A stretch of 63,329 bases of DNA, filler included, from Reticulomyxa filosa (GCA_000512085.1; 20 parts of 20 records of this genome joined end to end with filler, not necessarily neighbours in it), one strand, 5' to 3'. Shown: positions 30,624 through 35,840, counted from the whole stretch's first letter. Notes: generated by a model from the letters alone, not told the origin. Numbers and translations are program-made.

Positions 30624-31390
30624 GGTTCCAACCCTTTCGGTTCCAACTTCTTGTTGTTCCTTATTATAATTCTGAGGCGATGCAATTCCGTGAGCGGAAA
30701 ACTGATGTTCTATCAACTCTTCAAGTGTTTGATAACGTTCTGGACATATAGTTTTTCTCAACCGAGCCCCAGATGCGTCAATATACGTGTCTTCATCTTC
30801 TTCTTCAATTCCTAGTTTCAAACGTAAATACTTATTTTTTTTTTTTTTTTTTTTTTTATTTTTTTTTAGATTTAAATTTCAAATATCCATGTACCTAGAC
30901 TCGCTAATAGTTGAGCACGTCTCTTGCTTTGTTTCTTGGGTTTTTTCTCCTCATTGACACTCGCTTGCTCTTCCAATGGAACCCAACACGTATATTTACA
31001 CGCATATTTGAAATGGGTGGAGCGCAAATGCCGATTTAACCAACGCTTCTCTGTGTATGTTGCACTGCATATTTCGCAAGGGAACAACATCTTCAGCCCT
31101 TCCAGATGCTCAATCATTCGATGTGCTGTGTATTCTTCCAAGCCGTTGAATTGGAGTCCGTTACAATCTTGACACTCCTTTGTAAGTGCCCAACTTCTGT
31201 GTGGCACATATCTTTTCTGCTTTATTTCCCCCACTCCAGGGTTTAAAACTACTCGATTTTTTCCTTCTCCACTGTTCATCATGTCCAAATATTCTATTCT
31301 ATGGGGACTGCTATATTGTGACAACAAAGGAGTCCACTCGAGTGGGTCTGTTAATTCTGAAGATTTATCCACCATGTTCGAGATAATCAA
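30624..31390 (-). CDS. C2H2 zinc-finger protein, partial
   Basis: CQDCNGLQF....YTAHRMIEH and FPCEICSATYTEKRWLNRHLRSTH. An intron at ~30812-30893 joins to an acidic exon running off the contig. The 5' end is uncertain. Confidence 0.8.
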
Positions 31391-31754
31391 ATTTCCCTCT
31401 CCCTCTGCTGCTCTTTCTGGGCCAGCGCAACAATCAAGTGTTCCCTTCCCGCCAAATTTTCATTTGTATAGTAAAATCACTTTCTCCAATTATTCCTCAC
31501 GTTTTTGAGGGAATATACTGTACACATTTATTATTTTGATTAAACAGTAAAGCCAAAAGTTTTAGTAAGCAGCGCTAACGCTCGCTTTGTACAAAAGTCG
31601 AATGATTGTTAATATTTGTATGTGATATATTTTCATTTAAGACGACATGCCTCCACAGGAGATTAACAGCTTATAAATTAAAATTATAGCCTAGGTCTAC
31701 AGTTACAAGAGAACCCGCGCAACATTCGAAACCAAAAAAAGGCTAACTTTAATC

Positions 31755-32644
31755 ATGACATCATTCGATTTTAAGGTAGTTGTGCTTGGTGAAGGACGTG
31801 TTGGGAAAACCTCGCTTCTCATAAGGTAAAACAAAGATATCAAAAGTTATAACAAAACACACTTATTTCTGGGTTTGTCTTTAAAAAAGATATGTCGAAA
31901 ATGGTTTCACTGATTCGCAGCAATCCACAATTCAAGCTTCATTCCTAGAGAAACGAGTAAACATAGGATCAGATTGCGCTAGTTTAAAAATTTGGGATAC
32001 CGCTGGACAAGTATGTAATTATTAGAAAAGGATATCTGATTAACCACCCACCAAAAAGTACTATTTCAATTTATAGTTACTTTTTTATGCTTGTGGTCCC
32101 CCTTCCACTTTCTCCCTCCAAAAAAAAAGGAGAGGTATCACAGCTTAGCACCAATCTATTACCGAGATGCCGATGGAGCAGTATTAGTTTATGACATAAC
32201 CGACGAAACGTCGTTCAATAAAGCCCAAAATTGGGCAGTAGAATTAAAAAAAATGGCAAAACAAGACATTCACATAGTTATTGCGGCTAACAAGCAAGAT
32301 TTAAGTGCCAACAAACGGGTAAAATATTTTTGTTTGTGTTGTCCTTGCTGTTATTTCCCTCACAACTATAACATGGCTTTTATGTTTTCTAAAAAAAGGT
32401 GTCTGATGAAGATGCAAGATCTTATGCGTCACAAATCAATGCCAAATTAATTGGGACATCAGCAAAGACAGGGAATGGAGTTCACGAATTATTTCTTGAG
32501 TTAACCAGGTTAATGCTGGCTCATGCTAAATCACAACAAACTACCTCTCAGCAAACCAGCAACAGGCGAGGTAATAAAATCAAAATTGAGGAAACGCCAA
32601 CTACTTCACCTGTCAAAAATAAAAGTTGTTGTGTTGTCATTTAG
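31755..32644 (+). CDS. RAB21: Rab21-family small GTPase, complete, 4 exons
   Basis: Exons 31755-31825, 31890-32010, 32130-32318 and 32399-32644. [52 protein letters not shown], TSAK and C-terminal CCVVI. GEG and TIQASF are Rab21 signatures. Confidence 0.93.
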
Positions 32645-33086
32645 TTTGTTTCGCTTTTTTTCCTTTGTGCTGATGTGCTCCATTGTCTTGTTCAGTTTTC
32701 TCTTATCCTTACAAAGGAGGTACCCCATTTCTGTTGTGAATGGGAAAAAAAAAAAAGAGGAAAAACACAAGGGCTAAACAACAACGGTGTTGTGTTTTTT
32801 TTTTTTTGCGAACATATCCCTTTTTTTGTCCAGTCTCCTTTCTTGCCTGTTTTGTTTGCAATGGAAAAGGTTTTTAAATTCTTTAGCTTGGACTAAAGTG
32901 TTTTTCTATTGGACGGTTATTTTACTGTTGCAAACTTGAAATTTTCTGTAGGTTTTGAATTGACAGGTCTGATATCCGTCAGAAAAGATTAAATTATGAT
33001 GTACAAAATGAAAATTATTAAATAAATTATTATTAGTTCCCTCCTTTACCCCAGATCCACAAACAAAATCAAAAGTGCAATTAAGT

Positions 33087-35840
33087 TTATGATGTGCTTT
33101 TATTTTGGTCTGAATAAAACCAACCATTAAAATTTAATTGCGACACCAATTTCTGCAAAGTATATAGGGATTGTTGATTTAATGAGATATCCTTTACGTT
33201 TTCCATCCATTCTTTCAGCATCTCGTCAAATTCCTAAGTTTTTAAAAATAAATAAATAAACGAGTCTTTCTATAAAAAAAAACAAACGAAACTTTTTGAT
33301 TAGTTCGTAATTCATTTTCAAAGTCAAACCAATCAAATTCGCGGGCGGTATGATCCCATTGTATGAAGAGATCTATGATGTGAGAAAATTCTAGCACCAA
33401 GGATAACAGGTAAAATGTATAGACATAAGTGGTATGATTGGCAATGATAAAAAAATGCTTGCACAAATTATGCAAAAAAACATCATGAAGTTGCATGACT
33501 TGATCGATGGTATTACTGTGATTGATAATTTGATCAATCAAATGATGGTAATGACATTCGATGATTTCATTATTTGCATAAAACATGAGAACATTGACAA
33601 AGAATAACATTTTGTTAATGCAGATATTGACAAATCGACACAGATCATTGATACGATCCTTGGAAACAGTGGAGTGTGGACTGGACCACAAATGAGAGGA
33701 ACAGCGATTCGATTTCCAACATTCTTTGATAAGATAATGACAACGTCGTAACAAGAGCAAATGGCGAAATAGGGCATTATATCGCTCTAAATCGTTTCTA
33801 TGAAATATGACATCCAATGGATTGTCAATGGCATATTTTAGATGAAATCTCGACCAAAATTCCATGAAATGTTTCCAAGTGGAATAACTCTTTCGCGTGT
33901 TTGTTTTTTTGTATTTTTCAATCAGTTGTCTTGTGCACTTATTTTTAAATAGCATTTCCACCTCGCTTTTTCCTTCAAAGGTCCATTCACTAATGTCGAT
34001 TATAACACTGATGTCGCTCTTCATATCTGCTACTGTTGAAACAAGTTCTTCTATGTTGTCTTTTCTTTCAATCCAAATTTTGGTATTTCCTTGGTCGTTA
34101 TTCGATTTGTTGGGATGTAACGCCGATGTAAATCCAACATAACCACGTCCAGTGTTCATTTCGCACGTCAAATACTTTGATATGTCGAATTCGTTCAAAA
34201 ATAGCGCTAGTTTGTTGTCACAACGAACTTGAAATTCTTCCGTAATGAAATCGTACCCGATGTATACATTGTGATCCTTTCCCCCATATGCACACACATA
34301 TGCATATACATGTATGTACATATTGTATAAACAGTGCACAACATCTATTTGCATGTTCAACGTAAAGTCTACTGTTTGTGTTAAACTTTTGCATTGAATA
34401 AATCGATGGCAATTTCATTAGATACCACTTTGGCATGATTTCCTTTGTTATCGCATCCCCACAGAGACACTTCACACACTTTTGTTGTTCCGTCTTTCGA
34501 ACAGACGCTAAATCCAAGTACCAATGCATTGTTACAAATATCACTTCCATAAATGTCGTTTTCATGTTCAATCCACCAATCCATGCGATCGTGCTGAACA
34601 ACAAAAGCAAAGGCCTGGGCATGTGGAGAAGCGAGCACCGTAAAAGTGCACTCGAATCCATAGAGAATGGGTACTTTTTTGCTCATCCAACACGAGCCAG
34701 CGTGGACATTATGTTTTGTTTTTGCTCCATGAGCCGCAGTGGCAATCTGTTGGGGAAGATGAATGCACGATTGCGACGCAGCGAGAGAGCCCTGTCTAAG
34801 ATTGTGCAAGGGAAACTGGAATTGTAGCAACACGTCAGTCTTGCGATTGACTTTGGAACACAGTCCATAGGTAAGAATCGAATCCAAATCAATGTTGCCA
34901 CGACGACGAGTGCTAAATTTGGTCATTGCGAATTCCAAAGACACGCTGTCCAAATTCAAAGAAAACTTGGTAGCGGCGGATTTGAAGGGTCCCATATTTA
35001 AATCTGAGTACACAGATCAATCTGTAGGAGGGAGGGGGGGGGGGGAACATGAAAAGAGCAACAACAATAAATGGAGAGAAACAAGGAAAAAGAACCTCGA
35101 GTGGCAATGGTGACAGGAATGGCATCAAAGGATGGAATACTGGTGCATTCGTCCAAAACGCAATGCCAGAACTCGCCTTTAAACAATAGAAAGTAATCTC
35201 GCATTGCTTTGAGATGATGAAGCAAATGCAATTCGTGCACAATGACATGCCACAATTTCACTCCAATTTCTTCTCGCATTTCATTCAGTTTCAGATCCAA
35301 TACATAGCTGTTCAATTCTTTATTTTCGCATAACACTTTGTCACGCAAATCGTCCAACGTCTTTGCCAATTCGAATGTTTCCTCTTCGGTCAATCGCATC
35401 ACTTCGCTTTTTTCACTCTTTTTGTCCTCGCTAATGCCATCCATTTTGTCGGACCTCTTTTCTTTCCAATGTTGCTATTTGCAGCAAAATGCGCAAACCC
35501 AATATGCAAACAATGGATTAACACAAACAAGGGACACCAATACACAAATGCCTACCAATTCCGATTGCACTATCGATTGGTCTTTCGTTTGCCTTTGCGT
35601 TTGTACGTCTTTGGACGGGATGCGTTTCGCGATCAGTTCGATGGCAATTGCACTTACGCTGTTCTTGCGTGTACTGGATCGCGAATTCACTTTTTCGTTT
35701 TGTTTGGACAATTGCTGTTGCGTCGCGTACGTCTTTAAAATACACACACTCTTGCCAATGAACAATATCTTTTCCACCAGTGATATTGGAATATGTCGCA
35801 GCGGCAACATTCCATAGTCAATCACAAATTGGCTGTTCCC
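33087..35840 (-). CDS. TUBGCP4: Gamma-tubulin complex component (Spc97/Spc98 family, GCP4-like) with an inserted lectin-like domain, 5' truncated
   Basis: Exons 35840-35556, 35456-35096, 35003-34387, 34276-33293 and 33233-33087. MLP..HIP..LVEKILFIGKSV, LW..IV.E..LL.HLKAMRDYFLL.KGE, LKY....PLDVIF...DLERYNALFRHLLLLRR, H..FL and C-terminal LVSQLNFNGWF. Confidence 0.88.

Follow-up and report, generated by a model that had tools for sequence, protein, structure and literature searches.

Background

GCP4 forms a conserved structural spoke in the gamma-TuRC (gamma-tubulin ring complex), and GCPs (gamma-tubulin complex proteins) as a group are cytosolic. In GCP4 structures, residues 410-448 of the human protein form a disordered loop. 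The insertions in the GRIP2 domain of which we found a description, those of fungal Spc98 and Spc97, are short loops of up to ~50 residues (PMC7658347). The insertion of fungal Spc98/GCP3, which spans N626-L656 in C. albicans and K674-H713 in S. cerevisiae, bridges to the neighbouring spoke and governs the shape of the complex (PMC7658347). This Spc98 insertion is the closest precedent for the insert that we describe here in a GCP gene of Reticulomyxa filosa, an amoeboid foraminiferan. Both are lineage-specific and both lie in the GRIP2 domain of a GCP, but the Spc98 insertion is a partly ordered loop of 30-40 residues in GCP3, whereas the R. filosa insert is a predicted domain of ~250 residues in a protein of the GCP4 type.

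The second point of comparison is a fold. In the L-type lectins of the ERGIC-53/VIP36/Emp46-47 family (PF03388) the lectin domain is luminal and N-terminal, whereas the R. filosa insert would be cytosolic and nested within another domain; N-glycans of the ERGIC-53 type are absent from the cytosol. Cytosolic proteins, such as those with a BEACH domain, also use ConA-like and SPRY-type beta-sandwiches as modules for binding other proteins. A lectin-type fold is there put to use with no sugar binding, and the R. filosa insert would resemble these modules in that respect. The literature that we searched yielded no account of a GCP with a lectin or ConA-like domain and none of foraminiferal GCP4.

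Results

The window analysed here is a stretch of 63,329 nucleotides of R. filosa DNA, filler included, and all positions are counted from its first letter. Positions 30624-35840 correspond to NCBI contig ASPP01008997.1 (GCA_000512085.1) in reverse orientation. On the minus strand, five exons of a GCP gene, separated by GT-AG introns, were read and translated one by one between 33087 and 35840. The gene is truncated at position 35840, which is the contig edge, and its 5' part lies off the contig. Exon 1 (35556-35840) encodes the end of the GRIP1 part and has its 5' side cut by that edge. In a search of solved structures with the start of the public protein call P0001, it aligned with residues 256-288 of human GCP4; its match to the Pfam family GCP_N_terminal was weak and below the cut-off (E 0.005), only the last ~95 residues of GRIP1 being on the contig. 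The public call places the donor of this exon 27 nt further downstream, which gives nine residues more. Exon 2 (35096-35474, minus strand) holds the start of GRIP2 and ends on the opening base of a split codon. Together with the start of exon 3, it aligns with GCP4 residues 328-409.

Exon 3 (34387-35003, minus strand) encodes a strand of the GCP hairpin, then a linker and the insert's first half; its translation is identical to residues 232-436 of P0001. It is followed by intron 3 (34277-34386), which is 110 nt long, begins with GT and ends with AG, is in phase 0 and abounds in TG/TA repeats. Exon 4 (33293-34276, minus strand) carries the second half of the insert and then most of GRIP2. The last intron (33234-33292, GT-AG) and exon 5 (33087-33233, minus strand), a C-terminal tail that includes the stop codon, were read from the sequence alone.

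The identity of the gene as a GCP is given by both of its ends. Residues 138-339 of exon 4 match positions 87-248 of the Pfam GCP_C_terminal (GRIP2) profile (E 8.1e-27), and the end of exon 2 matches positions 1-28 of the same profile. Among solved structures, exon 4 retrieved GCP3 (4e-12) and GCP4 (1.7e-11), then GCP2 and GCP6; the bit scores for the first two are nearly equal (49.3 for GCP3 and 47.3 for GCP4). The product of exons 1 to 3, as represented by P0001, had GCP4 orthologues as its only solved-structure matches (2.5e-7). Set against human and Xenopus GCP4 (TUBGCP4; PDB 3RIP, 6V6S, 6TF9), the end of GRIP1 and the helices of GRIP2 align, whereas the C-terminal part matches GCP3 equally well and the N-terminus is off the contig. 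We interpret the gene as encoding a gamma-tubulin complex protein of the GCP4 type, for which orthology with GCP4 is probable. The first-pass annotation of the DNA had proposed a GCP4-like subunit of the gamma-TuRC, a proposal borne out by the GRIP2 match in Pfam and by the GCP4 and GCP3 structure matches.

Other features occupy the rest of the contig. A multi-exon small GTPase gene with the C-terminus CCVVI lies on the plus strand at 31753-32644; in the solved-structure search, its exon at 32130-32318 has matches to Rab21 (5e-19) and Rab5 (4e-18). Like the GCP gene, it has short GT-AG introns. On the minus strand, an ORF of 172 residues at 30872-31390 contains one zinc finger, of the C2H2 type (Pfam zf-C2H2_4, 1.4e-5). 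Upstream of it a further open frame extends towards the contig edge. A long T homopolymer (30838-30870), probably an intron or spacer, lies in the space that separates this ORF from the next open frame.

The insert lies within GRIP2. According to the alignments with solved structures, residues 166-250 of P0001 correspond to human GCP4 328-409, and residue 140 of exon 4 corresponds to GCP4 449, so that ~325 residues occupy the place of the 39 human residues 410-448. The excess, ~286 residues, falls within the 250-300 extra residues that had been proposed for this domain from the first reading, and the 39-residue human segment agrees with the accompanying statement that the loop of animal GCP4 is short at this site. 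The whole insert spans 33872-34896 on the minus strand, ~305 codons plus intron 3, with limits that carry a tolerance of about 10 residues either way. Within it, the candidate lectin-like core (33977-34836, minus strand) runs for ~250 residues from DVLLQFQF to ISEWTF and is suggested by an ESM-Atlas feature search and by hhalign, both of which gave weak signals. These limits agree with the interval 33970-34830 for which the first-pass annotation had claimed a lectin domain.

That annotation cited six motifs, in a stated order, as those of a legume-lectin beta-sandwich, and all are present in the translations of exons 3 and 4. The flanking GCP motif FSLNL and the motifs AGSCW..KVPI..GFECTF, AQAFAFVVQ and NALVLGF are in exon 3 (34387-35003), while HNVYIGY, GRGYVGFTSA, IDISEWTF and the closing GCP motif W..F.LKY...PL are in exon 4 (33293-34276). 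The longer form DL....HNVYIGY is created only by joining across the 110-nt intron 34277-34386. Two short stretches are referred to repeatedly below: HDRMDWW (34573-34593, minus strand), the most conserved motif of the insert, in which H, D, R and both W are invariant in three taxa, and GRGYVGFTSA (34121-34150, minus strand).

A HMMER scan of 1.84 billion representatives with exon 3 returned four matches, one of which was the R. filosa protein P0001 itself. Two others are relatives from metagenomic data: P0002, encoded on contig L001 (JGI sample 3300034953), has 38% identity, and P0003, on contig L002 (ENA ERZ27287025), has 49%. Both contigs carry a GCP segment directly upstream of the insert. 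The fourth match, P0004, is a bacterial repeat protein whose score is the sum of ten short stretches, and it was rejected as spurious. No relative of the insert outside a GCP context was found among the 1.84 billion representatives. When exon 3, exon 4 and the L001 ORF served as queries in word-index protein searches, they matched nothing but themselves, and a metagenome scan for further relatives of the insert yielded none that could be confirmed.

The three sequences align over the first half of the insert with 37-44% identity and 20 invariant positions, among them those of HDRxDWW and of (Y/F)G(S/A)D.C.N. Because two environmental homologues conserve it to this degree, we conclude from the alignment that the insert is real coding sequence. 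The same comparison indicates that selection maintains the fusion of GCP and insert in three or more divergent eukaryotes, and the fusion is rare in public data. The possibility had been raised at the outset that the fusion already exists in other SAR lineages; two uncultured eukaryotes, those represented by L001 and L002, do share it, which answers the point in part.

The environmental contigs differ from the R. filosa locus in several details. L001, an AT-rich homologue, has an 83-nt GT-AG intron of its own inside the insert (L001:895-977), and since it sits elsewhere in the insert than the R. filosa intron, intron positions are not conserved. L002 is a GC-rich homologue; between its GCP segment and its insert (L002:165-200) the frame shifts by one base at a (GC)n run, probably through an assembly error. 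The linker ahead of the insert is much shorter in L002 than in R. filosa.

Public annotation divides this locus between two proteins: P0001 (437 aa), which ends at a stop codon at 34381, and P0005 (359 aa), which starts at an ATG at 34321, inside intron 3. The point at which the public calls part is thus the intron between exons 3 and 4. If they were right, or if the gene were broken, the insert would be an artefact of joining, and the choice of junction does offer some room for this view, as 54 frame-compatible GT-AG pairs are possible for intron 3; a search for sequencing runs brought up none for the locus. However, neither public product would contain a whole GRIP2 domain; the Pfam GRIP2 profile falls partly on exon 2 and partly on exon 4, so that P0001 and P0005 would each have a share of it. 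Moreover, P0005 would open with 15 residues of translated microsatellite. L001 carries the start of GRIP2 and the first and second halves of the insert in line on one strand within 1.2 kb, and its exon at L001:978-1235 crosses the site of the R. filosa exon 3/exon 4 junction with no indel. The last 51 residues of that exon match the head of exon 4 (BLASTP 1e-12), and its first 28 residues match the tail of exon 3 ungapped, stopping one residue short of the exon's end. The Smith-Waterman score of L001 against the exon 3 tail is 38, which was reached by 1 of 2000 shuffles; the alternative reading scores 25.

This homology fixes the junction, and for that reason 34277-34386 was chosen among the 54 GT-AG pairs. 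Alternative pairs, which would drop the tail of exon 3 or replace it with translated microsatellite, were rejected, as it is the tail retained in our model that matches L001 (38 versus 25). Since an environmental homologue reads straight through the junction, the comparison indicates that the locus is one gene and that the public R. filosa annotation is a split gene model. That there are two genes here, or a broken one, strikes us as scarcely credible.

The TG/TA-rich, microsatellite-like tract at 34290-34345 makes up most of intron 3 and is open in the frame of exon 4; it probably misled the gene caller. The public calls extend over 33242-35840 on the minus strand and read through the donor of the last intron at 33292.

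The first-pass annotation identified the insert as an L-type lectin domain. Tests of this identification were run on exon pieces taken separately, the part in exon 3 and the part in exon 4. In the ESM-Atlas feature search, the nearest neighbour of the first half (34387-34800) was Lectin_leg-like (PF03388), with a score of 0.97 and 192 of 256 features shared, and the ten best named matches all fell within one family or clan. Shuffled or reversed proteins reach a score of 0.95 only about once in 100. The tool treats a high score as strong evidence only from a certain recognition value upwards, which this piece, at 2174, does not reach. In the same type of search no lectin neighbours appeared for the second half.

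Conventional profile searches gave a different result. A Pfam search of all the exon pieces, whole and trimmed, returned GCP domains only; no lectin family, PF03388, PF00139 and PF18483 included, matched any exon piece at E values up to 10. Searches of solved structures with exon 3 and with a three-sequence profile also retrieved no lectin. As a reference for more sensitive tests, metagenome contigs were searched with the degenerate pattern DG.A.WY-x7-GPVFG, which located 77 loci (L004-L080). At all 77 the surrounding ORF reads as a lectin of the ERGIC-53/VIP36 type, and many of these are full-length and apparently spliced. The lectin alignment drawn from them (A4) comprises 32 non-redundant full domains, every one of which matches PF03388 (best E 2.6e-97); one locus resembling vertebrate ERGIC-53 (L038) was left out of all lectin alignments. 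When a hidden Markov model of the 32 domains was run against the insert pieces (hmmsearch --max), none scored above shuffled sequences except, marginally, the first half from L002, whose 2.5 bits were reached by 4 of 500 shuffles.

Profile-to-profile alignment with hhalign separated the two halves. The first half (alignment A5) matched the lectins with E values of 0.25-0.42, a score reached by 87 of 150 column shuffles and hence at the level of chance; the best of these chance-level alignments sets GSCW on GSIW, HDRxDWW on GDGfAfWY and YGSD on FGSxD. The L002 first half as a single sequence aligned with template columns 57-124, the place expected for it (E 0.073). The second half (alignment A6) scored 18.6-18.9 (E 0.025-0.033), and exon 4 alone 20.5 (E 0.014). 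Here GRGYVGFTSA, whose counterpart in L001 is GAVWVGIISA, was placed on the lectin motif gYYFG.SAATG at template columns 217-232, the position predicted by the first-pass annotation. The second-half score was reached by 6 of 300 column shuffles (P about 0.02), and 17 of 100 fall in the same template region; with another column setting, A6 gave a different, non-significant alignment. Under relaxed settings the first half covers template columns 19-193 and the second half 181-247, so that the two are collinear, as low-stringency alignments tend to be. Scored in this way, the lectin-like motifs first noticed by eye are thus at chance level in the first half and marginally above it in the second.

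AlphaFold2 models were mostly strands for both pieces. Mean pLDDT was 34.5 for exon 3, modelled from the three-sequence alignment, and 43.3 for the insert part of exon 4, modelled from two sequences; both values are too low for a fold search.

These results can be read in two ways. The insert may be a conserved, folded, lineage-specific domain unrelated to lectins, whose motifs arose by chance or belong to beta-sandwiches in general. The profile-to-sequence tests and the profile-to-profile test of the first half, all at chance level, speak for this reading, as do the confinement of every relative to a GCP context, the Atlas recognition value under the tool's threshold, and the fact that the strongest motif of the family, HDRxDWW, is no lectin signature. 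On the other hand, the Atlas search named, with a score that chance seldom approaches, the same family that had been predicted from the motifs; the second half meets the expected lectin motif; and the two halves map in line on one lectin template. We regard an origin unrelated to lectins as possible but rather unlikely, and a ConA-like, L-type-lectin-like fold as fairly probable. The lectin identification therefore keeps the Atlas result for the first half and the hhalign result for the second, and found no significant counterpart in Pfam, HMMER or the first-half hhalign comparison.

Likenesses to the ERGIC-53/VIP36/Emp46-47 lectins extend to length, the core of ~250 residues being compatible with the 230-position Pfam model, to the language-model neighbours of the first half, and to the order of the weak motifs GSxW, (G/H)D(G/R)..W(Y/W), (F/Y)GSxD and GY.G.(S/T)A, which is the same in both. 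The insert differs from those lectins in giving no significant HMM match and in having mostly lost the calcium-binding and mannose-binding residues.

The latter difference was examined by column. In the alignment of 32 lectins, D127, T231, G232, D236 and H238 are invariant and N131 is nearly so; the calcium and sugar columns are the Asp (D127) of FFDTY, the Asn (N131) of the following xN, and the motif TG..D.HD. None of the three inserts has a conserved counterpart of these columns. The GDG motif of the lectins, with its Asp, is a separate case. In the hhalign alignment, which is weak and not significant, it is HDRxDWW and not AQAFAF that lies opposite GDGfAfWY, and the GDG Asp may on that basis persist as the Asp that is invariant in HDR; it would have been lost if the first-pass alignment with AQAFAF is right. 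The annotation's view that the sugar-binding site is degenerate is therefore upheld for most of the calcium and sugar residues, while the one residue on which it was based may have been kept.

Under either alignment, canonical calcium-dependent mannose binding is unlikely, because the calcium and sugar columns are without counterparts and the protein is also cytosolic. This bears on the idea of the insert as a functional L-type lectin, one that binds carbohydrate and links the gamma-TuRC to glycosylated partners or membranes. The fold signals from the Atlas search and the second-half hhalign comparison would fit such a role, as would the placement of the GDG Asp opposite the invariant Asp of HDR, but in three inserts nothing matches the TG..D.HD motif or the calcium loop FFDTYxN at its Asp and Asn, and GCPs reside in the cytosol, a compartment that offers no N-glycans of the ERGIC-53 type. 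We consider a sugar-binding lectin at this site very improbable.

Discussion

We lean towards the interpretation that the locus contains one gene of the GCP4 type in which the GRIP2 hairpin loop carries a divergent ConA-like beta-sandwich acting as a protein-binding or structural module that does not bind sugar. Sequence comparison shows the structure of the gene, its GCP identity, where the insert lies, how long it is and that two other organisms have kept it. In this interpretation the loop corresponding to human GCP4 410-448 holds a conserved, beta-strand-rich domain of ~250 residues with linkers. For this domain a ConA-like (L-type-lectin-like) beta-sandwich that has diverged greatly is the most likely fold, one suggested by weak signals, and the domain appears to have shed most of the calcium-binding and mannose-binding residues of the ERGIC-53/VIP36 type. 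Because most of those residues are lost, the domain, displayed on the surface of GRIP2 in a spoke of the gamma-TuRC, would be a protein-binding or structural module and no sugar receptor; a role as an adaptor is speculative. Docking to membranes or glycans through the insert, as the first-pass annotation imagined, is likewise speculative.

At the level of the gene, the split public R. filosa model is corrected to one gene. Should GRIP2 here contain a domain of ~250 residues that is both folded and conserved, this would constitute a new architectural variant of the microtubule nucleator, and the insert presents a concrete element for deletion, localisation and pull-down experiments.

R. filosa is distinguished by very fast and extensive microtubule dynamics with no central organising centre. 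Distributed nucleation in cells of this kind has been supported (PMC13371060). A wider reading of the locus is that GCP4 spokes in reticulose Rhizaria display a ligand-binding ConA-like module that docks nucleation complexes to partners, for which membranes, glycoconjugates and existing microtubules are the candidates. We hold this wider reading to be improbable. If it is true, the insert would provide a molecular way into the distributed nucleation by which, with no centrosome, reticulopodial networks are built.
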